Part shown: positions 1,046-34,230 of the stretch, in pieces | How the letters are laid out: every line of letters begins with the position of its first letter | Numbering within the stretch: position 1 is the first letter of the stretch | NCBI GenBank assembly: GCA_043228905.1 | Contig: JBHGNT010000002.1 | Coordinates: 24,614,001 to 24,678,000 of the forward strand | Source: Azolla caroliniana | Taxonomy: Eukaryota > Plantae > Polypodiophyta | Direction: 5' to 3' | Length of the DNA: 64,000 nucleotides | Made by a program: the position numbers and the translations under genes | Notes under the pieces: model-generated | The model's database searches: none | Told to the model about the DNA's origin: nothing | What the model saw: only the letters and a program-made list of their open reading frames with translations

Positions 1046-1867
1046 TGTTGTGGAAATCCATGGCTTGCGGGTCAGCTCGGGCGGGACCACCGGGGTCTCA
1101 GACCGGGGAGAAAGGTGATGAGAGAATCAAGCTTCGTTGGTATCAACTACTACGACTAGGGCTCTGGCCTAGTTGTCATCTCTTCATGTCAATGGCTTGG
1201 CTTGTCAACTTCGTTTGGCTTGGTCAGTCAAACCAGATCGACTCTTAGTCATTCAGATGGGTCCCGCGGGCCCCCGACCATAGATACAACAACACATTTT
1301 ACATAGATACAACGCATTATGTATAACTATATGTATATATAAACGACATATTACATCCACGACATCGAGCCGAACGACAACAAATTGGGTACGACGAATA
1401 TCCTCTAGTGAGCACCCAATCGGGGAGCTCTCGAGCTCGCTCAACGGTTGGACCAAAAACTACCAAAACCTTGAGAGCGTTCGAGCTCTAGAAATATAGA
1501 GAACAAAAAAAAGCTATTGACCACAAACCCTAAGCCCCTAGAGAGGACTAAAACCTAAGAGAGAGAGAAAGACCAAAAACCGGGGAGGAGATAAGAAGAG
1601 CCCCTTCACCTCCCTTTATACTATATAGATCAAGGAGGGAGGGCCATTAGTAGTTACCCCACTGCCCAGTGCGTGTGCATGTGCACTAATGTACACATCA
1701 CATTTACTCCGGACAACTCTTTTGTCCACTTCTGCACCCTTACATTTTCCGTTATTCTCTCTTTTATTCCTATGTACATTTTCTCATGTGCATTTGCAAG
1801 TCGTTGCACATCCTCGTTTTATTCGTTGTACCCGATTTTCTCACCGTTGCCGGAAATCTTCATGACA
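1046..1867. mobile_element. Probable solo LTR (~820 bp)
   Basis: Starts TGTTGTGGAAAT and ends ATCTTCATGACA (TG...CA, imperfect inverted termini). Flanks are ACGT/ATGT, a 4-bp TSD with one CpG transition. The interior is more GC/CpG-rich than the flanks. Confidence 0.5.
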
Positions 1868-2098
1868 ATGTGACAAAAGAATTTCTCGAGCACTTTAAAC
1901 CTCTTGAATTTTTACAACACTATCTCTAAATATTCTTGGAAAATAATCCACACATTTATTTTATTTTATTTAAAGAAGATTTTAAATAATCCCACACATT
2001 TAAGTGCTAGTTGTTGTTGGTTATTAGTCCATATCCCTTGCTAAGTTTTTAATTATTTGATTGTTTCTCTTTATTTAGAACTTTGTAGACTTTTAACG

Positions 2099-2560
2099 AT
2101 GTCTTTAGAGGAGGATGCTTGTTGCCCAGTGAGATTTAACAAGAAAATACCATGAATACGTGAGATTTAACAAGAAAATACCATGAATACGTGAGATTTA
2201 ACAAGAAAATACCATGAATACGTGAGATTTAACAAGAAAATACCATGAATACGTGAGATTTAACAAGAAAATACCATGAATACGTGAGATTTAACAAGAA
2301 AATACCATGAATACGTGAGATTTAACAAGAAAATACCATGAATACCATTAAACGCTTGAGTGGGATTAAAACTTGCTTCTAAATTAACAATCTAGTAGAA
2401 CTTCCTTTGCGTGTATAAAACATTATATAGCCGACTAATTTGTTTGCCCAAAAAATTAGTATTGTTAATGTTCTTGAACACAAACAAGATTTGGTCCATT
2501 GAGCTAGTAATTATTTCCATTTTCCAGGGTTATAGTATCTTATAGCTTCCCCTTATATTA
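2099..2560 (+). mobile_element. Degenerate Ty1/copia-like gag 5' remnant
   Basis: ATG at 2099 reads MSLEEDACCPVRFNK, resembling the copia gag 'PxxFNGxNYxxW' start. The frame is lost afterwards. Confidence 0.3.
2129..2345. repeat. Perfect tandem array, 7 x 31 bp (GTGAGATTTAACAAGAAAATACCATGAATAC)
   Basis: Identical units start at 2129, 2160, 2191, 2222, 2253, 2284 and 2315, with no spacers. Confidence 0.97.
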
Positions 2561-4444
2561 TAAGCAACACACTTCAATTCAACATACTAGGTTCATTCAA
2601 GTAGATATTAGTGTCCCACAAGATGCAAAACTAATTTATGCTACATGCTCACAGAGGACAAGCAAGTCTTGCTAAACTTGTTGCAATTGATCACAAGAAA
2701 TGTTTATGATTCCTTGAGAAATTTAAAACTTCCACCCAAACTAGACATTGATGTCTTATCAATTTTTGATAATCTTTCATTAATGATCATGGCAAAACAT
2801 GAGTGAGACTCTTGTAAAACAATTGCTTGGGTTTTGCTTCATTCAATAACACCTTGTAGAAGCCTCAAGCATCAAACTACAATCCACTTAATGTATATTG
2901 TTAAGGAAAATAATGTTATACTTTTTAGTTTTAACAGCTGTGTAAGGCTTAGTTTTCTAACTTAAAATATTGGTCATAGGACAAATATATGTAAGAAACT
3001 TGACCATTTTGTAGTTTGTGGAGGACTACCATTTATTAGGTAAAAATAGTTAATGGCCAATAAGATTGTAATGTGAGAGGAACCCTTTAGGTTTTCCAAC
3101 TTGCATAAAAGGGCAAGCGCTCTTATGTAGAAGGCGTCTTTGGGTGCCCAACTATGGGGCTGATTTTTGGATCTCATTCTACCCTTTTTATATTCAATAA
3201 GAGCCACTTTTCTTGTTAAGTATCTAACATCCATGATCCAGGACAAGAACCATGAAGACATCGTCACAAGAATACATAGAAATATCAAAGGAACACTAGA
3301 AAAAAGGGGGAGATAGTCTCACCCTAAACTAGAGGGCAAATGACCTACCATTTGGAAAATCGTCTCAAAGACTGTCCTTCAACCATCATTCATCCTCTCA
3401 TTTTGGATTAGCTTCTTTCTTCTTGCTAGACATAATGATCATTATTTACTAGCTAAAGTTTTACATAAAAACTTGCATTCACATTGAAACTAGTACCACA
3501 AATTCTTCTTCAAACCCTACTTTCTATGCCATACACATGCTCGCTTGCTTTGTCTTTCACATGTGTGAATGACTTCTCTGTGAAAACATATATTTGTACT
3601 TGATGTGGGCGCGGTGGATGTAATGCATGCAACATCAGACAACGGCAACGACAACAACAACAATTGTGGTTAAAACGGTAGGGGCTACAACTACTACAAT
3701 GACAACAATTGTGAAGGCGATGGAAAGCACTCACTGCTTCATCAACAATGGTAGAGCTTATGCGTCTCCCTCTCAACTATTCTTTTTCTCAATGTTTCTC
3801 TAGAAATATTGTGATGATAATGTAACTATTCTTTACTACCACTACATGATGCAATAATGTGCATCTTTAAGATGGCTAATGTTCAAGTAGTACCTCTAAT
3901 CGAAGACATTAAGAGTATCGTGAGTAAAAGGAATGAATTTAAAAGAGATGGCCGAAGTTTCAACTGGACTTGAATTATGGGTGCAGGGTAGTTCACATCT
4001 TCATAGATATGTCTATGTCACCAAGTCTTTCTATGAGACAATGCCTAGATCGTGATACAAATGACACTCGTGATGAGTGCTACCCAAATTAATAGGTACA
4101 AACTAGCTTTGCATTCGTGCCAGAGGGAATACAGTTTACCATAAAACCGTAGATAGAGGAGGAATACCTTTGAGGGATGGTGAGGGTCAATGAGTGAATG
4201 GAGAACAAGAGCTCAAGCCATTAGGTGTAGGCACAACGAGGTTGAATTTTCAGCGTTGTTTCTGTTTGACCCGAGGTTGATCGATGTAGCCATGAGTAGG
4301 TTGAATTGAGCTCCCCAAGAAATGGGAGAAGAATCAAATCTTTGGCTACATGCCTAGTGAAGAATGAGCCGTCGACTTGTGGGTAGGGGGGGAGTCGGGA
4401 CCCTTGAGGCCATTACGAAAGTGAGTCTACAAACCCAAAGCATT

Positions 4445-4870
<426 letters not shown>

Positions 4871-4952: not shown

Positions 4953-7483
4953 ATGGACATGGCAAAATCTTGGAACTTACCCATACGCCATAGCATCGAA
5001 AACTCTGCTAAGACCCACCTTCCCTTCCTTCCCCTGCACTCAAAAAGCTTCAAAACACTGCTAATTGTTTCTACTTCAGAACCCAAATCATCACAAAATG
5101 TGGTTTTAGAAGAACCTATGAGTAGTGCATCTTCTGGTTCGTCATTATATTTGCATGATCAGAAGAGAGAAGGTTTTTTTATGAGGAGATTCTTGGCCGT
5201 TTCTCTGCTTTCCATGGGATCTGTCATTGCTGAGCCATGTTTGGCAAGTCCAGATAGTGGTAAAGTTAAAGTAGGGAAGAAAAGCCCTTTCAATGAACAG
5301 AGGATTTTAGAGCAGAATAGAAGAATGCAATCCCTTAATAGTGTTCCAGATGATTTTCCAGGTTTTGTTAGAGAAGGTATTTATAGCTTCTAAATTCTTT
5401 TTTTGAATTGGTTTCATATAATTTATCTTTAAATTCTCGTTAATTATACCAATTGCCATGACTTGCTTTATGTCTTATCTTATTGTCAATGAAACATTTG
5501 TTGTTAATGCACTGCTTAGTAATGAATTTGTATAATGTTATTTTGCCCATGGGAATGTGAACAATGCACCAGTTACCATGGCTTGTATCATGTTGTCTTT
5601 GACATTGCAATCACCATTAATGCACCTGTTAATCATGAATTATAATAAATATATCATGGAAATTGGTAATAATGAAACTCTCATCATAAGTTTTATCATA
5701 CCTAAGAAATTTCTACTATTCTGCATACTTATCATGGACTAAATCATATTGTTTGCTCATGGAGATTGCTATTATTGCACTTCTTATCATGGATTTGGTC
5801 ATATTTTCTTTCATGGTTATGGTCATTAATGCACTAATTATAATCATGGTATATGGCACCATGATAATGCCATTAATGGACCTTCTGTCATTGTGTATTT
5901 TGTATTTTTCAGCATTTTGATTTTCTCTGATTACACTACTTATCATGGATTCTCTTCGCATAATTTGTTGACCATGGCAAATGGTTCAATGTCTTGCAAG
6001 TTTTGGTTAGTTGGATGCCTTTAAATACGTACATTCTTTACTTGGTGTACAAAAGTCATAGCCAAAATTCTTCTTTTTAGTCATGACTAAGAGTGACTGA
6101 TTTCTGAAATGTTTGATGGTAACACGTGTAGTTTGAAGGTGTGATTCTTAACACATATAGTTTAAGGCGTAATTCATTACACAAAGGTAGTTGCATGTTG
6201 CAAGTCATAACATAAGGATAGTTTCCAAGCCAATTCATTACATGAGAGTAGTTTTAAAATGTAATTCATAACAGAAGAAGTAGTTCCATTGCTAGAAAAA
6301 ACATTTGTTTGCATGAACAGGGTATAATGTGAAAGTAGTGACAACTGATAAGTATGTGAAATGTGATTCCGGGCTTCTTTATTTGGACATCGAAGAAGGT
6401 CAAGGAGATTTACCTAAGGAAGGCCAAGAGGTAAGAATTTTGGTTTGTTATAATGCTCATCCTTGTAGCTTTTATATGGGACACATACACGTGCGAAAAA
6501 TCAAACAAAAAGCTTCTATTTGTGGAATTTTTAGTGGAGTTATATGTTTTGGATATTACATGTGCTCTTCTTAGAGGAATATTCCCTCGAAGAGATATGC
6601 TTGCTAGAGGAACACTCCCCCTAGAGAGATATTCTTGCCTGAGGAATACTCCTCTCAAGAGATATGATTTGAGAGTAAATATTCCCTTTTCCTTGATCTT
6701 TTCCCTCTTGCTTTGTTTCAGGTTATATTCCATTATATAGGTTACAATGAATCGGGTCGCAGGGTTGATAGTACTTATCAACAAGGTCGGCCAGCTAAGA
6801 GTCGACTCGGCATCAAAGCGATGATTCCAGGTCTATTTCTCTAAACGCAAATAACCCTTCGTGTCAGCATAACAAAACATTGTAATGTTCGATTGGAACT
6901 CAGAAGCTTATGATTTTAATGCTTCTAGTTATGAATTTCGTTGAAATACGATGTTCTTTGTGTCCAGAAGCTAATTTCGTGAGAAGGTTATAATTTTGAA
7001 CGATTATTCAATAAAAAAAATGTGAAGAAGAAGAAGAAGATAGAGAAGATAGAAAAGCATATGAAATATTGATCTTTGTCCCTGAATGCTTATAATTTTG
7101 AGAAATGCATGATTTTTTGGTAAAATAACAAGAAGTATTGTAGCAACTCATTGAGATTAATCCAATGGCAGGGTTCGAGGAAGGTATTCAATCAATGAGA
7201 GTGGGCGGAAAGCGGAGGATCATTGTTCCTCCTGAGCTCGGCCCCCCGGTAAGAGAAGCCATTCAATAACACACATCTGTTGAGTTCTCACACACACAAA
7301 ATAAACATGTATTTAAAAAGAAATTTGTTAGTTGAGATATATATAGCACTGGTTCTTTTTCAGGTTGGACCATCAACGTTCTTTAGTGCCAAGCAATTCG
7401 AGGTGTTTGATGTTGAGCTTCTTGAAGCCAAGGATTGTACAAGGAGAACCATTGGGTTCTATTCCGATGTTGTTTGTGAATAA
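4953..7483 (+). CDS. FKBP20-2: Thylakoid-lumen FKBP-type peptidyl-prolyl isomerase FKBP20-2 (~279 aa). Exons 4953-5376, 6321-6430, 6722-6830, 7172-7248, 7364-7483
   Basis: All introns are GT-AG and in phase. The spliced product reads ...VIFHYIGYNESGRRVDSTYQQG...GFEEGIQSMRVGGKRRIIVPPELGPPVGPSTFFSAKQFEVFDVELL...CTRRTIGFYSDVVCE, matching FKBP20-2 including the C-terminal Cys pair. The N-terminus has a Ser-rich transit peptide and a twin-Arg (RRFL) lumen signal. Confidence 0.93.
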
Positions 7484-8162
7484 AGTTATGTTCTCAAGGG
7501 GCTTGTATCGATGATACGATCATTTTTGTGTCAAACATCTATACATAGTTCTTCATTTTGCCATGCTTCTTCATACATAGCCTTTTTTTGTAGCATGTGA
7601 AAAAACATGCCAGGGTGAGAAGTGGAAGACACCTGGTGAGGATTGTGGAGGAATTCTTTTTAAAGGAAGATTTATTGCTCTCTAATCGGGTTTGTAGACT
7701 GGATACATTTTTGATATGGTAGATTCAAATGTCAAACTTTGCATTGGGCAACTCGATCCATACGAGGGCGAGGAAGGATAATCAGAACACAGAAATGATG
7801 GAGTTAAGCTTGAACTAAGAAATGTGGATCCAATGGAAGTTGAGTATGTCAAATGGAGAATAAGCTCAATGTTGAGAATGTCAAATGGGAAATAAGCTCA
7901 TGTAATATACATGCATAGGATAAATGTGATCACAAAGGAGACACTTGCAAATGTGATGATCCTTGCATTTGCAAGATGTGGCCATGATGGTGACACAAGA
8001 CTTACAAGGTTCTCATTGTTGTGAGTCCAAGATGGTTTGCTTAACATGAAGTGAGGCTATTTGATATATCTCATAACGAGCACATTTTTATGTTGGTTTA
8101 TCACATTAGGGAGAGATAGGTGGGAGGTGGATTGCAACCTATACAAGGCGCGTGTGCACTGT

Positions 8163-8164
<2 letters not shown>

Positions 8165-8216
<52 letters not shown>

Positions 8217-8230
8217 TCTCTCTCTCTCTC
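8165..8230. repeat. (AC)n followed by (CT)n microsatellite
   Basis: Directly visible. Confidence 0.95.
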
Positions 8231-10861
8231 TATTAATTACACAAATGGAACAATTAGACTGTGCCAAGAACTTTTGCCAACATTATTCATGACATATTCA
8301 TCAATGAATGCTTTGATGATGATGATGTCGTTAATGATCCAACTTTTTATGTTCTTCGTATTCTTCAAAGATTAGCATTATGTATATAATTTCTTCTAAT
8401 CTGATCGCATTTGCTGTATTGGTGGCCACAAACATCAATAGGCTTAAATTTTGATCTTATTCATCTCAAAAGTCAATCTAACAAAGTCTTCTCCAAAGTT
8501 TGTTATACATAAAAATAGATTTCTCCCATTAATCTGGATTACAACAATCTTTCCAAGTCTCATTCATGTTTTTTATCTTTAAACTTCTCATCCTCATAAT
8601 AGAAAATCGTCTTTCTTATTTACATTTTTCTGGATTAATCAATGTGCACGAATCTTTCCCAAAATCGTTGTATAAGACTTATGTATACTTTTGATTTGCT
8701 CAAATTGTTATGCAACAAATGATGACACAATGCAATAATCAAATTTCGCACAATATATAGCTTTCATATGAATTGTTCATGTTAGCATTTTCCATGTCAT
8801 TCATCACTTCATCACCTTTATACATTTGACCCAAAACGCAGTGAAATGCTACCAATATTACTAAGGAGAAGCAAATGGAAAGATTCAATAATAATTGAAT
8901 CAAGATGCTCTTTAATGATACCAATATTTTGACATGCCTCTTCAAGTTTTACTTTCAACATGACAACATGTTAAGCTCTCTCCAAGCATGTCACAATAAA
9001 AATTCGATGAATCAGAATTGATGCAAACTCTTTTAATCACTTACAATCTTGATCACCAAATTTAGATTTTTAGTTTAGATAAATATTTAATGAAGCTATA
9101 CAGCTAAATAGTACTCGCCTAGGAGTCTGTGAAAGAATAAAGCATTTGGTGCATGTTGTACATATTTTTGGTGTTGCATATATATATATATATATATATA
9201 TATTTGGTGTGCTATCTATTAGTTACAACTTACTACTAGCTAGGAGCCATATAGGAGCTATAATCATTTTACATATTTTATGTTTTGTTTTGGATGGATA
9301 AGAGACATATTTCTTCCCTATAAATCTTGAAGAGCAAAAATTCTCTATTCAAAAGTCCTATGACTCTTTCAAAATAATTGAAACTTTGTAGAAGGATGTT
9401 TGTGTGGTGTTATTAGAGGAGAGAGGGTGGATGCACACATGTGTATATATGTGTAACATTTTACAAGAAATATGTGTGGGATGGTTAATGAATGAGAAGA
9501 GAGAGACAATAATATGTGTGTCTTCTCCATGTTTTATCCTTGTAGGCTATGTCGGTGAAGTTAGTCAAACAATTCTTGCCAAAGGAACGTCCAAGATATT
9601 GTTGTTCTATGCCAGTAGATGGACAAGTAAGGTGTTGACTTTACCATCCACCATGCATCTTTGAGTGATTGGGTTTGGTAGCTGGCTTACCATGATGTCA
9701 ACATTTGAGTGTGCAAACTTTAGTGGGATACAATGGTAACATATATGTTTCTTTCACGTTTACTTTAAATGTGTTCATCATCACCATTTTCTAATAATGT
9801 TATGTAACTCTAATCAAGACATTCATGACCGACGGTGATGAGATGACCTTTCGATGCAAGATAAGGGTCACCACAGTTGCAACATTTAAATGCATGTCCA
9901 TGCTAAAATGGATAAATAACATTTTTTTAATCATGAAAAATAGGACATAATAAATTCACTTACCTTATTGGAAGATATTGGTTCCAATTTGCAAGAGGTG
10001 AGAAATAATGTTGAGTTTCAACGAAACTTGTAATAAACCGTCACATAAATTTGTTGTAATTATGTGTTTATGTATCTCTATCATTGTGTTGTTTTATTCT
10101 AAAACATTTGTAACTATACAAATATTGTTCCTAATAAAGGTAAACCCCAACAAAATAGCCTCATATGTTTTGAAACTCGACGACTCTAGTACATTAAAAT
10201 CGAGAGGTTTTTGTTAGGTGAAGTTGTTGGGTATAAAAATACATAATGCACTTATATGGAACCAAAGTGTCGATTCTTGATAGTTTTCAACTCTAAATTG
10301 GGAAATCATTAAGGAAGAAGCGAGAGCTTGTGTGCCCCAAGTTAAGCGAACTCATGGCACGTTAAGCCCCCAAAAAAGGTATCATCGTGTAGGTAGATTG
10401 CTAATGGTGTGAACTCCTAACTGTAAGTGGCAATGTAGAAAACAAGGTTGGTTAAATAACTTCTTAGGATGACCCTAGTTAAGTTAAACCCCACGTGACA
10501 ACTCTGGAAGGCCCTCATGTCCAAAGCTCCTAGTAATTATCTCCGAGGTCAATGGTTAGAACTTAAGAGTGACCTTGGATAAAGTTAGTAGATGGATAGT
10601 GGGTGGATACATGGCATTGTAAACTTTGCCAATATGTTTTTGATGGTTAAAGAAGGCAAGTAACGGCAAATGACAGTTATTTGGGTTGGTGAGCAGATAG
10701 ACAAATGAATAAATTCGTGTCAAAAGCAAAAGAGCAAATCATAGTCATGGTCATGGTATTTTTAAGAGGAGACATAGAGATAGAGATAAGATAGAGATAG
10801 AGATAGATAGAGATAATGGGGTGCATGCATATCTAGAGGTAGGTTAGCAAGGTATTAGGTG

Positions 10862-12993
10862 ATGATGGACAAGTGTGAGATGGTAGACACTGTGATTGTT
10901 GGGGCTGGCATCTCTGGCCTTTGCATGGCCATCAAACTTCTGATGTCCGGCCGGACATCCTTCATCATCCTCGAGAAATCGGCTGGAGTCGGTGGTGTTT
11001 GGAACTCAAACCGGTACCCGGGTTGTGCTTGTGACATGCCCTCCCATCTCTATTCCTTCTCCTTCCACCGAGACCCTTCGGCCTGGTCTTCGCTCTACGC
11101 CACTCGTGCCGAGATCCACTCCTACCTTGCCGATTGTGCTCGGTCCCAAGGTGTCCTGCCTCATGTCCGCTTTCACACTGAGGCATTGTCTGCCACGTGG
11201 GACGATCGCACCGCAATCTGGCGCATCCTTGGCGCCCATCGTCAGCATGACCATGACCATGACCATGACCATGATGATGATGATGGTTTCTTTGAGATCC
11301 ATGCCCGCTTCCTAGTGCGCGCCATTGGACCGTGGCACATGCCCAAGATCCCCGACAAGACAAGTGTCCCCGGGATAGATCTCTTCGCGGGGCCTTCTTT
11401 CCATTCGAGTGCTTGGGACCCTAGCATTGACCTCCGGGATCGCGTGGTTGCGGTGGTGGGCATGGGCGCCAGTGCCATCCAGATCGTGCCCGAAGTCGCG
11501 CCTATTGCGAGAAAGCTCTACATTTGCCAACGCACCCCGGCATGGGTCCTTCCAAAACTCGAGGCCAGCATCCCTCCGGCCGTCCAATGCCTCTTGCGAC
11601 GCTTCCCAACACTTCTTTGCGGCTTGTTGTGGTGGACCTTCTTGTTTGTGGTAGAGCTCTACCTTTGGGCATTGTTGGGTGGGCCTAGACGACGGAGAAT
11701 GGGTGCTATGCTAGCGAAACGGCATTTGTATAGGTCGATTCATGATCCTACTCTCCGTGCCGCGTTGCTACCGACGTATGAGTTTGGCAATTTCGGTTGT
11801 CGCCGTTTCCTCACCTCTAGCACCTTCTATCCCACGTTGTCCCGCTCCAATGTCGAACTCCTCCCAGGTATAGTTCTTTCATGGTTTCAGACTTTGGCCA
11901 GCCAATGATTTGTGGGTACCATGAGGGACTATGATGTTTAGTTCCCTCACTTAGACTAAATAGTTGGCTCTAGCATCTAGATGGCCATTGTCTCCTAGAC
12001 ACATATACAGGCTCTCAAGTATTGGTGCAAACCTTTAGAAAAAAATTTATGTGCCCCATATGATTACATCCTCCCATGACCACATGTTACTCTCTTCTAA
12101 TTGTCTTTTTGATTCCCCAATTGTTGACTAGTCAACCTCTTGATGATAATAAAATACATCTCACGGGTACACCACAATAAAACATATGGTAGATAATAAA
12201 GAACAAAAGTGTTGACAAGGGGAAGGCTAGCAAGAATGTGATGGAGAGCACTAGTATGGTCCTTCCATGACCATAAGACTACTTAAATGTTAGATGAATA
12301 TAGAGGCACTTTAGTTTATTTGGAACCTTAGCTTTATTGATATTGATCAAAACTATACCTTTAGTCTTTACAATCTTAGTTTGGGACCTTAGCTTTATTG
12401 ATATTGATCAAAACTATATCATTAGTCTTTACAATCTTAGCTTCATGCCTCTCACTATCGTTCTCCTTCTTGTTCATTCAGGTGGCCTTCGAGAAGTTCG
12501 TCCTCATAGCATTGTTGTGAAAGACCAATCACAAGGTGTGGATGTCGAGAAAGACGTTGACGTCATTATCTATGCTACTGGTTTCGACATTCACTATCCC
12601 AACTTCGACATTGTTGGTTTAAATGGTATTCATCTCAAACATGCTAGCTCGAACTCCCTCCTTGGGGTGACCAAACATGGATTTCCAAATCTCTTCATGA
12701 TCCTTAACCCATATAATGGACTAGTGTTGACTAGCTTAACACTTGTAGCTGAAATCCAAGCTTCTTATATCCTTAGTTGCATGAGTCTACTTACACCCAC
12801 AAATAGATTACAACCTCGATCATTGGAAACTCGGGAAACAAGTCAACAACGATTCCAAGATCGTCTCACAAAGAAGTCTTGGAAAACTTGCCATACTACA
12901 CCACTCAACAAACCCATCTTCTGGACATTCTCTACAATCGATTACATATATGATGCATGTTTTGCCTCACCCTCAGATTATATTATCAAGTGA
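10862..12993 (+). CDS. Type I Baeyer-Villiger monooxygenase, FAD/NADPH-dependent (~505 aa). Exons 10862-11867 and 12482-12993
   Basis: FAD Rossmann motif VIVGAGISG. BVMO fingerprints GGVWNSNRYPGCACD and FAGPSFHSSAWD. NADPH Rossmann VAVVGMGASAIQ, QRTPAW, catalytic-Arg region GCRR, DVIIYATGF and GFPNLF. A phase-1 GT-AG intron (11868-12481) joins the two ORFs in frame. Confidence 0.9.
12319..12440. repeat. ~61-bp tandem duplication near the 3' end of the BVMO intron
   Basis: TTTGGRACCTTAGCTTTATTGATATTGATCAAAACTATA...TTAGTCTTTACAATCTTAG occurs twice in a row. Confidence 0.85.
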
Positions 12994-15166
12994 ACACCTA
13001 CCATATATTTAGGCATTTTGAGTTTTCAAAGCCTAGCTTATATATATTTTCCTCTCGTTATAATGGCATTTTCCAACCTCTCTAGCGCATTTCCATTACC
13101 AATTAAAATCATTGCGACAACTCAAAACAATACCAATGATTTATGTTTGGTTTCTCCCTAACTAGCACAACATAAACAATTGAACATTACAAAAATTGTG
13201 AGCTAGTCCAACCCGATCTCATTACCCATCTTTGTCAATGTCTTTATGTACTATCCTATCCTCTTCTTCATACCTAATAATAATGTGAACTAATCTTTAA
13301 ACCTCACCATCTAGCCAACCTTTGATACATGTTTATAAATATTTTAAGCTCATCTTGGTTGTTGATTTTAGACTTCCTCTTTTTTCTCAAATGTAATTAT
13401 TAGTCGCTCTCTCACTCTCACTCTCTCTCAAAGGTTGAGCTCATATGTTTATGCCTTATTCACGCATAGAGACTTGGTGCTTCGAAGTATGAATATCCCT
13501 TCTTAGGAAGGAGACACACATCAAGAAAAATTTTGTACTTGGGTTCCATGAGTCAATATTGGCCTCTCTCTCTCTCTCTCTCAAAGTATTCTATGTATTA
13601 CACTAATATCACCATTGATAATATAGAAAACCCTTGTTGTCACAACTAGATTGGGTTGCCACATTCTAGCTGCTCAAACCGCCCGAGAGCCGGCTGCTAC
13701 AAAGGTCTGGCACACATTTCAAGTTCCTCCCACAATAATCACCAAGTTTTGGTAGAAAATCTAGAAACAACAACACACGAGGCGAGTTACCACGTTCCAA
13801 TGGCTATTAATACATAAGTCCCTATTGGTGGGAGCATGGCAACGTGGGAACCTTAGCTCTCCTAATTGTGTAGAGTGCCCAAATGCAGTAGAATCAATAC
13901 GACACTATTGTGCACACGCACACGCACACGCGCACGCGCGCGCGCACACACACACACAACCCTTGTCTTCTTAGCTAAGAAAATGTTTCAAAAAATTTCG
14001 GATTTTAACAACTTTCAAAAGTTATCATATTAATGCATCAAAGTTTAGCCGAATCAATTGCAATTTATCCACTAGTGCTATGCTTGGGTAGTGTAGTATC
14101 ACGTCAACTTCATAGTTTGAAAATGCATGTTGGCCAAGAATTTGTGGCGTAATCATATGTTGATGATACACTATCCATATGGCAAATTCATCATAATGAT
14201 ATGAGATTGACAATGGATGTTGTCGAATTTTATGGATTAGTTGTTGGATTTCATGTTAACTCTACCTTTGAGATTAGTTGACCAAAGGCTTGGGGAAATC
14301 ATTTTGTTCTTTGGATAGATCCATATGCCGTATCAAGGAATTCCTATTTCCTAAAATAGGTAGGATTGTGGGTTGGATTGATCACAATAAGTAGTAATGA
14401 TCAGTACTACTTTGTCTCTCATCGTCCCTAATTTTGGGGTAATTAATTGTCCTATTGTAATATACCTAATGTAGCTTAAACCACCATTGCTAATCAAAAT
14501 TTGAGCTACAAAAAACCTTTAGTTGCAATAAATTGACTTTGTAGTTACCTCACTCCATGCATACCAACATGAGATACCAATGTATCATACACCCATATCA
14601 CCACTCATCCCATGGCATCCTCATCTTTAGAAACATTGTTATGGGCTTTCTTTCTCTCAATTCACTTGCTTTACCCCTCTCTCCAACCAGAATTGTGTCA
14701 CTGAAATATATCTTTGTAATGGTAATCCATTGCCTTTAAAATAATTGCAACTATTAGTCTTATCCTTCAGCTGGCGCTTCTAATTTATCATGATTATGTC
14801 AATCATGCAAATAAATATCTCATAACCTTGTTACTGGTTTCCAAACCCAAAAAAAATATGCTCCATAAGGCCTTTTGACATTTGTTTCCTCTTTAAGGGA
14901 ATTCCCAACTAAAAGTATATCTACGAAACGAACATTTCTTTGAAAGGAAGGATTAGAGAGAAAAATATAATTAAATGAAAACCACATCATACAATATGTT
15001 ACAACATAACTTTCTACGAAGATATTCATAGCTCTACAAATCCATATAATACATACACAACACCTTTATGGTTCAATTTGATTCACCATGGCTCCAAAGA
15101 TCCTTCTGCATCTGATTCCACCCATGGGATGAAACATGTGTAATGTATAGCTTCCAAAACCACCCT

Positions 15167-18100
15167 TCAAGTTGTCAAGATCGCCGGCAAGTTTGTTTGT
15201 TTCCCCATAATAGAAACCTTTGTGTCAGGGAAGTAAGGCTCCCCCGGGATCTCGGTAACCATCCCATCACTGGTGACCTCAATAGGGTACCTAAGCAAAT
15301 GCCCAGGTAGATCTACGACCTCAGGTCCGGAAAAGAGATCCCAAAGTTCATTAGCCACTTGTCGGACATATCTCACGCATTGCAAGCTCCACGGCTCTAA
15401 GAAGCAATCATCGAGGCGGCCAAGGTGTTCATACCATAGACTCATTCTGAATCCATGGACTTGCCCTTTAGGTGCATTTCCTTCCTTCCATGTGTGTGAT
15501 GGTTGGTATGCTCCCACCGCCATCTCCGTGTCTCTCCCTCCGTCCATCGATCTCTGGTTTATGTTGGCCGACCCAACTATGATATACTCATCGTCCACTG
15601 CATGATTTAAGCAAAATGAAAACATGTTTAATCGTAGAAAAGCACAAAAACTGTCTATCCATCCTTGAGCATCTTCAATGCATCAGAAAAGCAGAAACTA
15701 TATGCATCAATGTGGTTCTATGCACAACAAAAATATCCATCCTCCATAAACATCTTCAATACATAAAGGAGGCAGGATATGCATCCATGAATGAGCATCT
15801 TCAAATACATCACAGTTTGACAGTGCCAATCTGTGAGAGCACTTACACAGCACAATGCTCAAAAGAAAATTGCAATGAGGAGGATATCATCAATACATTA
15901 AGAAAAGCACAAATAATACCCAGAAATCGACACAGGAGCATCTTCAATGCATCCAAAAGGCACAATATCAAACTGTCCATCAATGAGCATTTTCAATGCA
16001 TTGGAATATCAGAACGCAATGGCCAAAAGAAAAGCACAAACAATAACCAGCAATTGACACAGGAGCGTCTTCAATGCATCCAAAAGGCACACTATCAAAC
16101 TGTCCATCAATGAGCATTTTCAATGCATTGGAATATCAGAAAGCAAATCGCATAGAAAAAATTCTAGTATGCAGAAAACTGAAAACACAAGACGAATATA
16201 GAGAAGACCAGAGCATCTTCAATGCATAAACAATACGAATGGCAATAAAGAATTGGATGTCTCACCTATCATCATCTTAGAATGCACATAAATCATGAAG
16301 CGGCGATTCTCCAGTGCGAGTTTATGGTGAAGAGACAAGTCCGAAACTGGCTGTGGTGGCCCCTCATCAGGAAGTCTAGTCTCTCTGTTTCCAAGACAGA
16401 AAAAGCAAAGATAGTCAGTGGGCGATTCTGCCCGGCCAGCAGCTCGTAGAGCAATTGTGATTCGCTTATACATCATCTCCATGGTCCTCCTTTGCCAATC
16501 AAGAATAGATTGTGTGGCATCAGAGTCTGGTAGGCCCTCCGGATACATAGGAATAACAATATAGGCAACAAAACGCTCCCCGGCCTCAATCTTGCTCACA
16601 ATCTTGAGGGTGATCTCCATTGGGATAAGATGCAAGCATCCGGCCTCTTGCATCGCATCCCATGCATAAGAACTACCTAAGAAATATTGGTTCTCGATGT
16701 AAATGAAATGATTTGCGCGGCGGATGGACTGAATGTATGCATCTTGGATGCTCCTTTCGATAACTTTGTCTTTCCCACTAACAAGGCCCATATCAGCAAC
16801 GTCTTTAGGAGTGTCAGGAAAGCCGAAAGCTGCACCGGCATCAATGGATCGGAAAAGTTGGGCATTCCAACTCCCTGTATCTTCCTTAGCATCATCGTTG
16901 GCATTAGCTGGAAGAAGGCCTTCAGCCTTGGCTAGATCAACAAGCACTTTGGCAACCCCTTGCTTATTCCACCTTTGCGTGAAGTTAAAAACAACATCCC
17001 AGGCTATGGAACCTTCGAGCTGGCAGTGTATATCATGCCATGGTTGCCTAGGGCCACCGCTAGCAAGAGAAGCAGTTCTTAGGCAGTTTTGGTAGAAATC
17101 ACGTGAATGCTCAGCATTTAGTGTGCGAAATAGCGAATGTCTTTGATCATCGAATCGTCCATCGCAGACATCAATCCCTCCTATGAAACTAACAACCTTT
17201 CTGGCATCTGAATGTGGAGCATACTCAACATCAACTGAAATAAGCTTCTGATGGTGGGTGAACATGGTAGAGATTTGGAAGCCTTGAACTGCACTCACTG
17301 TTTCATCAGCTAAGCGTGGACATAACAAGCATTTCACTTTAGATTTGCGGAAGAAATTCATCGTACTTTCATCATGTGTTCCCATGATGCCCTGTTGTTT
17401 AACTAAACCGATGGAAGTCCGATCATCCCAAACTAGTAAAGCCACACACACTCCTTCTTCTGCCTTCCTTTTCAAAAGATCTCCAAGAGTCTCTGACACT
17501 GTATCCCCATAACGCAAGAGTGAAATCTTCGTATAAACCGACCATCCAGCAATGTAAATGAAGATCTTTGCATTTGATATGGCCTCATACATATCCTTCC
17601 AGCAACATGAAGGCTGAAAAAGCTGGTCACCAGATAAATGAATCTTGGGTAGAAACCCATCTTGCATATCGGCATCCTGATAGAGCTTTACATGACAATC
17701 TTTACGGGCACTGAAAAAAGCATGTCGAAGGGTCCATCCATCGTCATAGTCTTTTTGAACCTTGAAAAACTGAAGACTGACCTCCACCATACCTCCTCCT
17801 TTGACTTTGGATCCATTATCATTGTATAGGTCATGCATACCTTCAACTTTCTCTCCGGAGAGCAAAGATTTCACAGGTATTTTGGCCTTACCTATAACAT
17901 GTGAACCCACAAGGTCATCATCCTTGATAGAGATAACGACCTCAGAAGCATAATGTGCACAATAAATTTGGACGCTTTCATGCCACTCTGGATTCTTAGT
18001 CTCCAGTTCCACCATATGGGTTCGACTGACCCGGGCATTTCCCAAGTCCACAGTGGCATACAACCTGCTGGGTCCTCTACCCATATGCACGGTTTGTTCT

Positions 18101-19341
18101 ATGAGGCCCACAACCTGGAAACACGTGACAAAATAGAAAGTTTTATCACATGCATACATGTCAAATCTACAGAATCCATCATCACATCACAATGAAAGAT
18201 CCAACATTGTTCCATTGTTTAAAAGAGCATTCAAAGAAAGACCATCAAATGACACAGATCAACCTACATCACTAATCATTGTTCTGATGATTCTAATATG
18301 AGCATTCAAAGAGAGAATGTCAAATGAGACAGATCAACCTATATCACTCATTATCATTCTGATGATTATAATATGGGCATTCAAGAAAGGTCCACAAATT
18401 TGTGAAACAAATTCACAGGGCCTATCACTGTTTCATTGATTAATTCAGCACTCAAAGAAAGAGCAATAAAATACATGGTCAAATCTAGAAGATAAATGAA
18501 TATCCCATTGAATATATAGGTATCCTATAAATACTCACAAAATATAGCAATAAAATCTCATTACTCATCAGATTTCCACTGATAATAACGGATCTAAAAC
18601 ATACGCCATTCGGGTTCTTTTGATCAATTGGGCAGTCAAAGAATGATATACGAATTTACATGTAAAACTCATCATCTTCCCAATGAAAAACCTACCACTG
18701 TTCCATTTATTAATTAAGCATGCAAAGAAAGCCCTGCAAATTGACAAATCAAACATGCATTTACCCATCTTCATTCCAGTGATTGATTGAGAAAATTCAA
18801 AGAGATGTTGGCAAATTTGAGGATCAAATCTACCTTACCCATCAAGTGGAGTACGATGGCACTAATAGCCACAGAAATTTATCAAAATCTGCATTATCCA
18901 TCATTACGTTACTGATTAATTGAGCATTCAAAGAAAGAACCACAAATATATAGATCAAATTTACGTTATTCATTGGCATCATCCCATAGACTAGTTGAAT
19001 AACTCAAAGATAAAACCACAAAGATTTAGAGTTCAAATCAACAGGACAACTTCATCATCCCATTGATAATTTGGGAATTGAAAGAAACAAGCTCGAAGTA
19101 CACAGATTCCATGAAAGGCACACAAGAATCGTTTTTGTTAAATAATTAGGAAACCGAAAGAAAACCCCGACAAATGTACAGGTACCAAAATCAAGACCGA
19201 AACATGCTGTACTTGATGAGAGTGTTACCCTACCCGTCGAAACATTTTGGGAGCGTTCCCAGTGAGCCGAAATTCATTAACCAACTTCTGTGCTTTAATG
19301 ATAGTGCAATGAAGTGTACCATGAAGAAGATGCTGCTCCAT
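15167..19341 (-). CDS. PLD: Phospholipase D alpha-type (C2-PLD), copy A (~795 aa). Exons 19341-19234, 18114-16266, 15597-15167
   Basis: Exon 1 reads [15 protein letters not shown], typical of PLDalpha. C2 domain, two HKD motifs ([16 protein letters not shown]), [10 protein letters not shown] and GSANINQRS are present. Junctions are GT-AG and in phase, and the 3-exon layout is typical of PLDalpha. Confidence 0.94.
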
Positions 19342-22817: not shown

Positions 22818-25800
22818 TCAAGTTGTCAAAGCATGGGGCAAGAAACGCGATGGTTTCCCCATAATAGAAGCCTTTGTATCGGGGAAGTAAGGCACCCTAG
22901 GGATCTCGGCAACCATTCCATCACGGGTGATCTCAATAGGGTACCTAAGCAAATGCCCAGGTAGATCTACGACCTCGGGGCCGGAAAAGAGATCCCAAAG
23001 TTCATTAGCCACACGTTGGACATATGTCACGCACTTCAGGCTCCATGGCATGAGGAAGCGATTATCGAGGCGCCCAAGGTGCTCGTACCATAGGCTCATT
23101 CGGAATCCATGGACTTGGCCTCGAGGCGGGTTTCCGTGCCTCCATGTGTGTGATGGTTGGTATGCTCCCACCGCCATCTCCGTGTCTCTCCCTCCGTCCA
23201 TCGATCGCTGGTTTATGTTGGCCGACCCAACTATGATATACTCATCGTCCACTGCGCGATTTAAGCCAAATGAGAACATAACCACCTTTAACCATTGGTA
23301 GCCATCCATCCATCCTTGAACTTGACTACAGAAAATATCTCAATGCATCTCCAAGGTGTGCCATATCCATAACAAAAAATCACAAGAATGTCCATCTTTA
23401 ATAAAAGGAAGTCCATCCATCCCTCCCTCCCTGAGCACATACAATCTCTCAATGCATCATCTCCAAGGTTTGCCATATCCATGACAAAAATCACAAGAAT
23501 GTCCATCTTCAATAAGATGGTCCTTCTTGTGATTTCATCATGTACATGGCACACCTGGGAATTGAAGATGGTCCTTGTGATTTCATCATGGATATGGCAC
23601 ACCTCGGAAATGCATTCACAGATTGTCTGTGCTCAGGGATGGATGGATGGATGGAGGATGGACTTCTTTTTGCATTGAAGATGGACATTCTTGTGATTTT
23701 TTGTCATGGATATGGCACACCTTGGAGATGCATTGAGATATTTTCTGTGTTCAAGTTCAAGGATGGATGGATAGACTTCTTTTTGCATGGAAGATGGACA
23801 TTCTTGTGATTTTTGTCATGGATAGGGCACACCTTGGAGATGCATTGAGAGATTGTCTGTGCTCAGGGAGGCATAGATGGATGAACTTCTTTTTGCATTG
23901 AAGATGGACATTCTTGTGATTTTTGTGATGGATATAGCACACCTTGGAGATGATGCATTGAGAGATTGTCTGTGCTCAGGGAGGGATAGATGAATGGACT
24001 TATTTTTGTATTGAAGATGGACATTCTTGTGATTTTTGTCATGGATATGGCACACCTTGGAGATGCATTGGGAGATTTTCTGAGTGCATGCAGCAGAGTA
24101 GGAGCATCTTTCAATGCAAAAGGGAAAGTCATACACCCATCCCTGAGGACAGACAATTTGTGAATGCGTTTCCAAGGTGTGCCATATCCATGACAAAAAA
24201 ACTTGAAAGTTGGCCATCTTCAATGCAAAAAAACAAACCACAATTTGTGTACACCAAAAATGAGTGCATGCAGCAGGGCAGGAGCATCTTTCAATGCCTA
24301 ACCCCACACCAAATTGCAACACAGAATTTGGTGTGCCTCACCTATCATCATCTTGGAATGCACATAGATCATGAAGCGGCGACTCTCCAGTGCAAGTTTA
24401 TGGTGCAGAGACATGTCCGAAACTGGCGGTGCTGGCCCCTCATCAGGATGTCTAGCCTCTCTGTTTCCGAGACAGAAAAAGCAAAGATAGTCAGTGGGTG
24501 ATTCTGTCCTGTGGGCAGCTTGAAGAGCAATTGCGATTCGCTTATACATCATCTCCATGGTTCTCCTTTGCCAATCAAGAATAGATTGTGTGGCACCAGA
24601 GTCTGGTATGCCCTCAGGATACATAGGAATAACAATATAAGCAACAAAACGCTCCCCGGCCTCAATCTTGCTCACAATCTTGAGGGTGATCTCCATTGGG
24701 ATAAGATGCAGGCATCCAGCATCTTGCATAGTATCCCATGCATAGCAACTACCTAAGAAATATTGGTTCTCGATGTAAATGAAATGTTTCGCGTGGCGGA
24801 TGGAATGTATGTATGCATCTTGGATGCTCCTTTCGACGATTTTCCCTTTGTCTCGAGCAAGGCCCCTACTAGCAACCTCCTTAGGGTTGTCAGGAAAGCC
24901 GAAAGCTGCACTTGCATCTATGGATCGGAAAAGTTGCGCATTCCAGCTCTCTGCATCTTGGTTAAGGCCATATTCCATAGCATTAGCTGGAAGAAGGCCT
25001 TCAGCCTTGGCTAGATCAACAAGCACTCTAGCAACCCCTTGCTTCTTCCACCTTTGTTCGAAGTTAAGAACAACGTCCCAGGCTATGGAACCTTCGAGCT
25101 GGCAGTGTATATCATGCCATGGTTGCCTAGGGTCACCACTAGCAAGAGAAGAATTTCTTTGGCAGTTTTGGTAGAAATCGCGTGAATGCTCAGCTTTGAG
25201 TGTGCGAAAGAGCGAATGTCTTTGATCATCGAACCGTCCATCGCAGACATCAATCCCTCCTATGAAACTAACAACCTTTCTGGCATATGAATGTGGAGCA
25301 CACTCAACATCTACTGAAACAAGCTTCTGATGGTGGCTGAACATGCCAGAGATTTGGAAGCCTTGAACTGCAGTCACCACTTCATCAGCTAAGCGTGGAC
25401 ATAATATGCATTTTACTTTAGATTTGTGGAAGAAATTCATGGTATTTTCGTCGTGTGTTTTCATGATTCCCTGTGGTATAACTAAACCGATGGAAGTTGG
25501 ATCATCCCAAACTAGTAATGCCACAGAAACTCCATCTTCAGCCTTCCTTTTCAAGAGATCCCCGAGACTCTCTGCCACTGCATCCCCATCCCGCAAGAGT
25601 GAAATTTCCGTATAAACCGACCATCCGGCAATGTAAATGAAGATCTTTGCATTTGATATGGCCTCATACATATCCTTCCAGCAACATGATGGCTGAAAAA
25701 GCTGACCACCAGATAAATGAATCTTGGGTAGAAACCCATCCTGCATATGGGCATCCTGATAGAGCTTTACACGACAATTTTCACGCGGGCTGAAAGAGGC

Positions 25801-27604
25801 AGTTCGAAGCGTCCATCCATCGTCGTAGTCCCTTTGAACCGTGAAGAATTGAAGACTTACATTCACCCTACCGACTTTAGATCCGTTGTCGTGATATAGA
25901 TCACGCATACCTTCAATTTTGTCTCCGGAGAGCAAAGATTTCACAGGTATTCTGGCCCTACCTTTAACCTGGGAACCCAGAAGACCATCATCTTTGACAG
26001 AGATAACGACCTCTGAAGTGTAATGTGCACAATAAATCTGGTTGCTTTCATCCCACTTTGGATTCTGGGTCTCCATCTCCACCATATTGGTTTGGATGAC
26101 CAGGGCATTCCCTAAGTCCACAGTAGCGTACAACCTTCTGGTTCCTCTACTCATATGCATGGTATGGCTCATAACCTGAAAACATGTAACAAAATAAAAG
26201 GTTTTATCACATGCAGACAGACAGATCCCATTGACAAGAATCCGGCATCATATGCCAATGAAAGACCCGACATCGTTCCATTGTTAAATAGAGTGGATTC
26301 AATGGAAGACTGCCACATGATACAGAGATCAATCTACATCACTCATCGTCGTTCTGATTATTGATATGAGCATTCGGAAAAAAGGCCCACAAATTTGTGA
26401 AATAAATCCAGAGAGCCTAAGTTCCATTGAGAACCCAAAGAAAGATTAATGAAATACACAGTCAAATCTAAAAGATAAAATGAATACCAGATGAACAATT
26501 AGGCACTTGAGGAAATACCCACAAAATCTCGTTATCCATATGCATGCCATTGATTGATAATTGGCGCTTCAAAGGGCAAGCCACAAAACATACAGATCGA
26601 ATATAGATTTCCTATCATGATGAACTGAATATGTAAGTAAAGAAAGAACTGCATAATCTAGAGACAAAATCAACATTACCTCCACAAATTTACAGATGAA
26701 ATCTACAAGACTGAGTTTTTCCTTGGAATACAAAGAAATTATGGCCCACAAAACCATGGAGAGCTCATAGCACCGAAAGTCCAAACAAAAGACCCACAAA
26801 ATATACTCATCTCATCAATCCATTGATTGGTTGACCCACAAAATCTCCCAATCAAATGTAGATAACCCATATTCATTCTCCCATTGAAAGACCCAAAAAA
26901 ATATAATGATAAAATCTACAAGGCACATTTTTTTCCCTTTGATCAATTGGTCATTCATTCTAAGAGAGACATACAGAATGCATCATCATCCCAACGAAAA
27001 ACTTACAAATGTTCCATTATCTAACTGAGCATGCAAAGACAAGCCTGCCAATTCATAGAACAAATACATGTTAGATAGATTCATCAACTAGGGACTGATA
27101 GAGAGTAATCAAGAAATACCGGTGATGAACAAATCAAATCTACATTTAAACCCATCGTCATCACAGGAATAAATTTGGAATGCAATGAAAAAACCAGGAT
27201 GGACATGAGATCAACTCAGGAAGAACTATGTTGTAGGGATGACCATTGATTAATCAAGAAGTCAAAGAAAGACCCAGAAATATATGGATCAAATTTACGT
27301 TATTCATTGCCCCATATTGATTAATTGAATAATTCACGGAAAAAAACACCATAATTTACAGATGAAACGTACGTAACTCCAGCATCCCGTTCTTAATTTG
27401 AGAATTCAAATTAGAAACACTTATAGTCCAGTGAAAGACAGAGAATAATCATTCTAATACTGTTTGGAAATTCAAAGAATAACTTGACCAAAATTACATA
27501 TCAAAATGAAGGCCTGATGAAAAGGTTACCCGTAATCCATTAACCAAATTCTCCGCTCCAAAGACAGTGCATTGAAGAATACCATGAAGAAGATGTTGCG
27601 TCAT
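22818..27604 (-). CDS. PLD: Phospholipase D alpha-type (C2-PLD), copy B (~780 aa). Exons 27604-27530, 26175-24342, 23251-22818
   Basis: Exon 1 reads [18 protein letters not shown] motifs are HQKLVSVD and HSKMMIVD. Intron positions and phases match copy A, and the frame is open throughout. Confidence 0.93.
23302..24235. repeat. ~110-115-bp minisatellite in both orientations (fold-back) filling intron 2 of PLD copy B
   Basis: Two forward units at 23302-23509, an inversion axis CCATCTT-CAAT-AAGATGG at ~23503-23520, reverse units starting ~23514 (partial), 23565, 23678, 23791, 23900 and 24015, then one forward unit at ~24135-24230. Confidence 0.92.
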
Positions 27605-34157: not shown

Positions 34158-34230
34158 GGAAACCACCGGAGGAAGGAAGGAAACAGAGGAGAGCCCAGAG
34201 ATCGAATCGGGAGGAGGCGATGGAGATGAA

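Follow-up and report, generated by a model that had tools for sequence, protein, structure and literature searches.

The 64,000-nucleotide stretch of Azolla caroliniana DNA analysed here (the window, to which all positions refer) carries a two-exon gene for a flavoprotein of the type I Baeyer-Villiger monooxygenase (BVMO) family. We regard it, with reasonable confidence, as a functional nuclear fern gene whose ancestor was most likely passed horizontally from a soil bacterium to an early fern, with vertical inheritance from then on. Both the family and this origin are described in 'A plant-centric view of class B flavin-dependent monooxygenase evolution and diversity' (Plant J 2026, PMC13557801; preprint 10.1101/2025.09.16.676513), and the window gene is therefore a further family member and not a discovery.

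Structure, transcription and selection

The gene encodes a class B flavoprotein of 505 amino acids at positions 10862-11867 and 12482-12993, and all its features lie on the + strand. It starts at the first ATG, and inspection of the open reading frame and the sequence revealed an in-frame stop immediately 5' of this codon. The 335 codons of exon 1 (10862..11867), followed by base 1 of a Gly codon that the intron splits, include both Rossmann motifs (for FAD and for NADPH), both BVMO fingerprints, the catalytic Arg and an insert that is hydrophobic and helical. Exon 2 (12482..12993; 169 codons after the split codon, and a TGA stop) encodes the C-terminal part of the FAD domain and carries the motifs ATGF and GFPN. 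The exons are separated by a phase 1 spliceosomal intron of 614 nt (11868..12481; GT..AG), within which a 61-bp unit is tandemly duplicated (two copies, 12319-12440). Searches and trees used each exon separately rather than one joined spliced protein.

A preliminary description of this DNA had predicted the splice junction 11867/12482 and a product of about 505 residues with one spliceosomal intron; both predictions hold, and the junction agrees with transcript evidence. Coverage by transcript-like contigs from four studies was confined to the exons; contigs from three runs (X1, X2, X11) joined the junction with a 614-nt skip, and depth over 12005-12338 of the intron was zero. The aligned part of the contigs begins at 10821, with letters further 5' unaligned, which delimits a transcribed 5' leader of at least 10821..10861; the contigs extend 5' of this point through a GATA/AGAGAT microsatellite at 10770-10815. 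They end at 13206 and thereby cover the 3' untranslated region over at least 12994..13206. The two-exon fern gene is real, expressed and correctly spliced.

Comparison of exon 1 with an orthologue-like contig, L001 (approximately 94% identical), gave a dN/dS of 0.18. For a second transcript variant, those of its differences that were listed comprised 19 synonymous and 11 non-synonymous changes in exon 1, the counts for exon 2 being 5 and 3, respectively; family-conserved columns were kept at 63/67 positions in exon 1 and 11/13 in exon 2. The substitution pattern indicates that both exons are under purifying selection. Decay of exon 2 was considered and is not supported, given the mostly synonymous variant differences and the conserved columns retained there.

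Family membership and a remodelled C-terminal loop

The second BVMO fingerprint, GGVWNSNRYPGCACD (10991..11035; residues 44-58), was located by regular expression and HMMER alignment; it satisfies the pattern [A/G]GxWxxxx[F/Y]P[G/M]xxxD, and its last Asp aligns with PAMO D66 (HMMER). The BVMO-identifying fingerprint, FAGPSFHSSAWD (11384..11419; residues 175-186), matches FxGxxxHxxxW[P/D], a BVMO identifier whose W stands against Y/F in FMO/YUCCA proteins (PMC7570161 and PMC13557801). Regular expressions also matched the FAD Rossmann motif GAGISG (10901-10918; residues 14-19; GxGxxG), the NADPH Rossmann motif GMGASA (11459-11476; residues 200-205) and, in exon 2, ATGF (12574-12585). The GCRR motif (11795..11806) was placed by the HMMER domain 2 alignment to PAMO: because FGCRRFL aligns with FGTKRLI of PAMO, the second Arg of the motif, Arg 315, corresponds to PAMO R337. 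In PAMO this catalytic residue serves to stabilise the Criegee intermediate. The two fingerprints and GCRR had been claimed beforehand, and all were recovered, GGVWNSNRYPGCACD and GCRR also in the alignment to PAMO. The residue preceding the catalytic Arg is Arg in this copy, as against Lys family-wide. An in-frame CATGAC/ATG microsatellite (11246..11285) encodes the tract HDHDHDHDDDD, which lies in a surface region that varies and has another length in L001.

Profile and structure comparisons point in the same direction as the motifs. Pfam returned FMO-like (E 5e-16), and the top solved-structure matches were PAMO, OTEMO, STMO and CHMO at E ~3e-35 versus ~1e-12 for FMOs, the FMO matches in the PDB comparison being ancestral FMOs (4e-12). 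The C-terminal profile matched solved BVMOs at 1e-21 to 1e-32 (CHMO 4e-32). For P0009, the closest full-length relative, a model with pLDDT 93 (of P0009, not of the window protein) had BVMOs as all of its top 50 PDB matches (TM 0.76-0.83). Judged by this sequence-based evidence, the window gene is a type I BVMO-family flavoprotein gene. With PAMO (1W4X), STMO (4AOS), OTEMO (3UOV) and the CHMOs (3GWD, 6A37) it shares the fold (via the P0009 model), the fingerprints and the Asp/Arg pair, but identity to solved type I BVMOs is only about 20-27%, and the subfamily is a different one. The window protein is also shorter (505 versus approximately 540 residues), has a hydrophobic helical insert and, unlike the solved enzymes, a rebuilt C-terminal loop.

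Database names offer little on function. The NCBIfam match, to PtlE, was only partial, scoring 121 bits where the cut-off is 1100; the Atlas look-alike clusters bear generic names apart from one named EthA family, and one Myxococcota member of a neighbouring cluster was named 4-hydroxyacetophenone monooxygenase by its source. For the affinity to the HAPMO-like or long-chain ketone group suggested in the preliminary description, such names are no more than leads. The nearest bacterial relatives bear generic names only, as do plasmid tblastn matches (generic oxidoreductases, 38-40% identity). By analogy with the family, FAD would be reduced by NADPH and react with O2 to a C4a-peroxyflavin, which would attack a carbonyl to form a Criegee intermediate stabilised by the conserved Arg and rearranging to an ester or lactone; alternatively, the peroxyflavin might oxygenate a soft heteroatom.

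Alignment with plant-like and bacterial members revealed a remodelled C-terminal loop in the window copy, KKSWKTCHTTPLNKPIFWTFS (12871..12933). Every further plant-like row and the majority of the bacterial ones contain W..GGCxSWY......WPxS, in place of which the window copy has KTCHTTP ... FWTFS, with deletions of 2 and 5 residues inside the loop; a third deletion, of 4 residues, lies in the preceding helix, outside 12871..12933. A near-invariant Tyr and Pro are absent from the loop, and GPNTGLGH of the relatives reads NPYNGLVL. The counterpart in P0009 (residues 470-491) is a loop in the predicted model, and P0009 keeps the C-terminal motifs. An HMM alignment maps the GGCxSWY loop of the subfamily onto the C-terminal active-site loop of CHMO, the residue match to the loop Trp of CHMO/PAMO being uncertain by 1-2 positions. 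As read from the alignment, this remodelling is particular to the window copy and is a new observation here. Because the loop is rebuilt, coupling or substrate range may differ from the relatives.

These changes raise the question of whether the copy is still a Baeyer-Villiger catalyst at all. Its loop could have been rebuilt after duplication on the way to another oxygenase or an NADPH oxidase, or in slow decay. The exchanged motifs, the three small deletions, the lost Tyr and Pro and the Arg for Lys before the catalytic Arg would fit such a course, as would the long exon 2 branch (0.96 versus approximately 0.5 for exon 1) and the intact motifs of the closest relative, P0009. However, the gene is expressed and properly spliced with an open reading frame, the differences between variants are mainly synonymous in both exons, the second transcript variant has zero length changes across the loop region, and the majority of strictly conserved columns is retained. 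We thus consider loss of this catalysis unlikely. Such a loss would be compatible with a bacterial origin of the gene. A duplicated, bacterially derived BVMO with a rebuilt loop that is nonetheless expressed and under purifying selection could also be a scaffold that has been turned to other chemistry, within a metabolic route of ferns not yet described, a speculative idea to which we give about the same modest weight; examples would be oxygenation of heteroatoms, substrates of a new class or an altered interaction with the cofactor.

Origin of the fern lineage

A mixture model was used for the careful tree, which was complemented by an AU test; all trees were unrooted. The window protein falls into a plant-like clade with the Ceratopteris protein KAH7426834.1 and six Adiantum proteins (support 100/100), and this clade was also obtained from exon 2 only (support 99). 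The sister group of this clade in the careful tree is a large and diverse clade of Acidobacteriota (97/78; next node out 95/97), in agreement with further trees, including that of exon 2 alone. The fern clade is, in these unrooted trees, sister to the sampled Acidobacteriota and not nested among them; both clades lie inside a bacteria-dominated radiation, and the named representatives around them are bacteria (Myxococcota, Sphingobium, Terricaulis). Among 1.84 billion representatives, only three were closer than the bacterial bulk. Identity of the window protein is 44-48% to Candidatus Sulfopaludibacter and Candidatus Acidiferrum and approximately 45-52% to the Pteridaceae proteins of the clade and other plant-like transcripts (plant-like transcripts include P0008, P0012 and P0417); the slowest-evolving plant-like member reaches 49-53% full-length identity to Acidobacteriota. 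Seed-plant, lycophyte and bryophyte proteins were not found among the best 120 or 150 matches, although such proteomes were in the database.

The acidobacterial relatives (Candidatus Sulfopaludibacter SbA4, Candidatus Acidiferrum/Acidoferrum, Candidatus Angelobacter, Bryobacteraceae), annotated as 'NAD(P)/FAD-dependent oxidoreductase' or, in IMG, 'CzcO-associated flavoprotein', form the sister clade in every tree. They equal the window protein in length (approximately 495 residues in the bacteria) and in motif layout (YPGCACDxPSHLYSFSF, GASAxQ, QRTPAW, FYPxLxRPNVEL). Unlike the window gene, theirs are intronless and keep GGCxSWY and GPNTGLGH, and the bacterial proteins have small inserts that are absent from all plant-like members. 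In Adiantum and Ceratopteris, gene spans exceed the coding sequence by 147-284 nt.

Since the 100/100 fern clade is sister to Acidobacteriota within a bacterial radiation, we read the gene as old, present across ferns and probably bacterial in origin, bacterial ancestry being the best reading of the trees. The presence of Ceratopteris and Adiantum in the clade further argues for vertical inheritance within ferns since an old event. The donor would have been a soil bacterium related to today's Acidobacteriota and the recipient an early fern; vertical inheritance, duplication, intron gain, adoption of a host-like base composition and purifying selection would have followed. PMC13557801 independently reaches the same conclusion of bacterial origin.

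Ancient vertical descent from early eukaryotes or early green plants, with many losses, is an improbable alternative. Survival would then be confined to ferns, a green alga, Amoebozoa and part of the early-diverging fungi, and the likeness to Acidobacteria would reflect slow evolution or a gene passed from eukaryotes to bacteria. The tree does contain another eukaryotic clade nearby (Ramicandelaber, Powellomyces, Protostelium), the AU test did not reject ferns and this fungal/amoebozoan clade as one group (p = 0.338), and a chlorophyte BVMO stands beside the fern BVMOs according to PMC13557801. Against this, the careful tree pairs ferns with Acidobacteriota and places the other eukaryotes elsewhere, seed plants, lycophytes and bryophytes are absent from the best 120 or 150 matches, the clade of Acidobacteria is of very large size and diverse, and 49-53% full-length identity is a high value for lineages that would have parted when the domains did. 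The tree check that had been proposed favours Acidobacteriota, while the AU test still allows a shared eukaryotic clade.

A recent transfer private to the species or genus, to which the gene's own cluster with its single other sequence (92%) might point, is contradicted by the tree and very improbable: the 100/100 clade at approximately 45-52% identity speaks for long residence and duplication in plants, and gaps common to the plant-like rows separate them from the bacteria. Of the horizontal acquisition suggested in the preliminary description, bacterial ancestry stands as the best reading, with the ferns sister to Acidobacteriota and nested among bacteria, whereas a sporadic private acquisition does not agree with the fern-wide clade.

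The exons differ in base composition: GC3 is 0.61-0.64 in exon 1 and drops from 0.42 to 0.31 along exon 2. A chimeric gene, suggested by this difference, was rejected, as each exon alone lands in the same clade and GC3 declines from 5' to 3' in the same way in two relatives, P0009 and P0008, as well as in the neighbouring HAD-like gene. The BVMO gene lies between a multi-exon FKBP gene (FKBP_C domain match in an exon at 6713-6844) and tandem PLD-alpha genes (15167-18159; best named matches ferns, 67%), in keeping with the plant genes described beforehand on each side. The independent contig L001 has 880 bp of upstream non-coding DNA in common with the window (90% identity), and a scan for bacterial promoters and terminators gave chance-level results only. 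A bacterial contaminant or assembly chimera, which a GC-rich exon 1 (57%) amid AT-rich DNA and bacterial best matches outside ferns could have suggested and which had already been judged unlikely, is effectively refuted by the intron backed by junction-bearing RNA-like contigs, the plant flanks, the plant-like upstream DNA on L001, homologues annotated on Adiantum and Ceratopteris chromosomes, and a 5'-to-3' GC fall found equally in relatives and a neighbouring gene.

Related enzymes and meaning for fern biology

The accessible text of PMC13557801 reports 13 fern BVMOs, proposes independent horizontal transfers on the basis of BLAST best matches and a tree (Figure S3), names an Acidobacteriota protein at approximately 45% identity as best bacterial match, and contains no enzyme characterisation of fern BVMOs. 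The window gene fits this family in being nuclear, in its FxGxxxHxxxW fingerprint and conserved Arg, and in its place in the fern clade at the stated identity to Acidobacteriota; RNA evidence, selection estimates, the mixture-model tree with AU test and the copy-specific loop remodelling go beyond that text. Among photosynthetic eukaryotes, type I BVMOs are also known from the moss Physcomitrium patens (PpBVMO) and from Cyanidioschyzon merolae (CmBVMO) (Beneventi et al. 2013, as cited in PMC4498894 and PMC7486406); in the literature these are the sole plant or algal BVMOs with measured activity, and they are likewise considered bacterial in origin. Their BVMO clade is a different one, the moss enzyme grouping with PAMO/STMO-like actinobacterial proteins, and are separate acquisitions from the fern BVMOs. 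[quoted passage not shown]

The locus is a clean and well-anchored example, with intron, expression, selection and plant neighbours, of a fern BVMO family that is so far known only through genome mining. Gene transfer from bacteria to plants has a recognised hotspot in ferns, and for BVMOs, which are prized as biocatalysts, natural roles are known in few cases. No new category is opened, because the family and its proposed origin are both already in print in PMC13557801. The locus could nevertheless be an entry point for characterising a fern BVMO biochemically for the first time, and the window copy together with a loop-intact relative constitutes a natural experiment on the role of the conserved C-terminal loop.

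Structure, expression and surroundings of the gene

The type I Baeyer-Villiger monooxygenase (BVMO) gene lies on the + strand and comprises exon 1 (10862-11867), whose start codon is the first ATG and directly follows an in-frame stop, a 614-nt GT..AG intron in phase 1 (11868-12481), and exon 2 (12482-12993), which ends in TGA. This model yields the 505-aa product estimated in the preliminary description. Transcript contigs from four public runs, belonging to four studies, were confined to 10821-11867 and 12479-13206, with zero depth over the intron and the flanks. The exon junction proposed earlier (11867/12482) was joined exactly as predicted in contigs of three of the four runs, and a 722-nt transcript contig across it was identical to the window. 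The window BVMO is an expressed plant gene. The repeat at 10770-10815 was skipped in read alignment; position 10821 is the first aligned position and not a placed transcription start. This AGAGAT/GATA microsatellite belongs to the 5' leader, directly upstream of the start codon. On L001, an independent metagenome contig of 2 kb with an orthologue-like copy of the gene, the microsatellite is shorter by 21 nt. Inside the intron, 12319-12440 consists of 2.0 tandem copies (95% match) of a 61-bp unit.

Plant genes had been described on both flanks, and both were recovered: upstream, an FKBP_C exon (6713-6844) of a multi-exon FKBP-type isomerase gene, and downstream, a tandem pair of PLD-alpha genes on the - strand (15167-18159 and 22818-26172). 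Among named sequences, the PLD-alpha genes match those of the ferns Adiantum and Ceratopteris best (67%), so the window comes from a fern. Both PLD-alpha genes open with a very long coding exon (>620 codons) and end in a separate one. Further along are a single-exon HAD-family hydrolase gene with a Ser-rich N-terminal extension (32871-34166, - strand) and a TPR/RPAP3_C-type gene (51387-54296, + strand). Long (TG/CA)n microsatellites at 4447-4788 and 8100-8240 produce spurious reading frames with a high content of Cys-Met, or of His-Thr and Cys-Val.

GC3 of the BVMO is 0.61-0.64 in exon 1, and in exon 2 is 0.42 dropping to 0.31. The same 5'-to-3' fall is found in relatives, namely the intronless gene for P0009, the closest full-length relative (0.80 to 0.44), and the P0008 transcript (0.59 to 0.35), and in milder form in the nearby HAD-like gene (0.53 to 0.39). 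The gradient therefore looks like a host pattern rather than a foreign signature.

A type I BVMO with a remodelled C-terminal loop

The protein was analysed exon by exon (10862-11866, 335 aa; 12484-12990, 169 aa). Exon 1 matches FMO-like in Pfam (E 5e-16) and carries the FAD motif GAGISG, the NADPH motif GMGASA and, as previously noted, GCRR and both type I fingerprints, the FxGxxxHxxxW[P/D] fingerprint as FAGPSFHSSAWD and the second as GGVWNSNRYPGCACD. In an HMMER alignment with phenylacetone monooxygenase (PAMO), the second-fingerprint Asp falls on D66, and R337 pairs with the second Arg of GCRR. The top solved-structure matches of exon 1 were PAMO, OTEMO, steroid MO and cyclohexanone MOs (E about 1e-35 to 1e-29), against only about 1e-12 for true flavin monooxygenases. 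Exon 2 shares 42%, 35% and 34% identity with the C-terminal part of the family in P0009, Adiantum and Ca. Sulfopaludibacter, respectively, and a profile of this region matched CHMO and PAMO (E 4e-32 to 1e-21). The structure model of P0009 (pLDDT 93.4) had only type I BVMOs among its best 50 PDB matches (TM 0.76-0.83). An in-frame microsatellite (CATGAC x4.8 and ATG x5; 11246-11285) codes for an HDHDHDHDDDD run; it is 9 nt shorter in L001, and relatives have other low-complexity runs at this site (poly-Ser in P0009).

Near the C-terminus, the motif W..GGCxSWY......WPxS is common to all remaining plant-like members and to most bacterial ones; the window BVMO reads SWKTCHTTPLNKPIFWTFS at this position. 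Small deletions have removed 4, 2 and 5 residues from this region, a near-invariant Tyr and Pro are gone, and GPNTGLGH of the relatives is replaced by NPYNGLVL. On the P0009 model, the first deletion shortens a helix and the other two map to a loop (residues 470-491), which in an HMM alignment sits at the C-terminal active-site loop of CHMO, with residue equivalence uncertain by 1-2 positions.

The window protein retains 63 of 67 exon 1 columns and 11 of 13 exon 2 columns that are conserved in 85% or more of 46 non-plant relatives, a retention resembling that of other plant-like members. Exon 1 of the window and L001 differ with dS 0.185 and dN 0.034 (dN/dS 0.18); the coding parts are 94% identical, and the 880 bp of non-coding DNA upstream 90%. 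In each of three runs bearing different organism labels (X1, X3, X11), a transcript that matches the window exactly occurs beside a second variant of about 95% identity; of the subset of differences listed for the latter, exon 1 has 19 synonymous and 11 non-synonymous, and exon 2 has 5 and 3. The pair may reflect allelic differences in a highly heterozygous plant, homeologues, or mixed or hybrid material. The second variant has the same length as the window across the remodelled loop, so the remodelling predates the two variants and has been kept since.

Origin of the fern BVMOs

A word search with exon 1 returned a single 92% match (P0001, from L001), then Adiantum proteins at 45-50% and two more sequences at 50-52%, followed by thousands of bacterial proteins at 44-48%, the named ones being Acidobacteriota. 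Since a transfer claim rests on absence elsewhere, an exhaustive representative search was run; only three of its 14,978 matches stood above the bacterial bulk, one of them Ceratopteris richardii KAH7426834.1.

In a mixture-model tree (56 rows, 490 columns; all trees were unrooted), the window protein, P0001, P0009, P0008, P0012, Ceratopteris and Adiantum formed a plant-like clade (100/100), sister to an Acidobacteriota clade (97/78; next node out 95/97). A larger tree, a third with more Acidobacteriota and an exon-2-only tree agreed. The fern sequences were sister to the sampled Acidobacteriota and not nested in them, and named representatives around both clades were bacterial (Myxococcota, Sphingobium, Terricaulis, IMG 'CzcO'). 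The plant-like rows share gaps absent from bacteria, and P0012, the slowest-evolving among them, shares 49-53% full-length identity with Acidobacteriota. Nearby in the same bacteria-dominated subfamily is a second eukaryotic clade (proteins P0284, P0365 and P0255/P0395), of the kickxellomycete Ramicandelaber and the chytrid Powellomyces, both fungi, and the amoebozoan Protostelium, which hints at further inter-domain transfers. Joining the ferns to this clade was not rejected by the AU test (lnL difference 8.1, p 0.338). The preliminary observation is confirmed, and horizontal transfer is the best explanation for the origin of the window BVMO.

The gene is no private acquisition, its clade being old and fern-wide. 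Of the earlier proposal, horizontal transfer is favoured by the Acidobacteriota sister clade and bacterial surroundings; the suggested HAPMO/long-chain-ketone affinity and chemistry are putative. On L002 1-3920, a contig of a sister ENA metagenome assembly, an intronless ORF (1676-3208) encodes P0009 (510 aa, 52% identical, motifs intact) amid plant-like DNA, with a GA/GAGA microsatellite extending into the ORF start; it probably belongs to a lineage of paralogues, in this fern or a relative of it. Identities of 45-52% to this intronless gene and to Pteridaceae proteins show that the family has long been resident in ferns and has duplicated there. The Adiantum and Ceratopteris gene spans exceed their CDS by 147-284 nt, compatible with one short intron, whose position was not read.

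The moss PpBVMO, held to be the sole plant BVMO until 2020 (PMC7486406), falls in another clade, one that is PAMO/STMO-like (PMC4498894). A later study (2025 preprint; Plant J September 2026; PMC13557801) reports 13 fern BVMOs mined from 78 genomes, a Salvinia cucullata BVMO with its best match in Acidobacteriota (about 45%) and one chlorophyte sequence adjoining the fern BVMOs; BVMOs are proposed there to have been transferred three times independently, into mosses, ferns and one angiosperm, and the fern enzymes are uncharacterised. The probable transfer into ferns would be old and fern-wide, and is already published. Our independent data reproduce the picture given in that study, and add to it RNA support, selection estimates, a rival-topology test and the loop remodelling.
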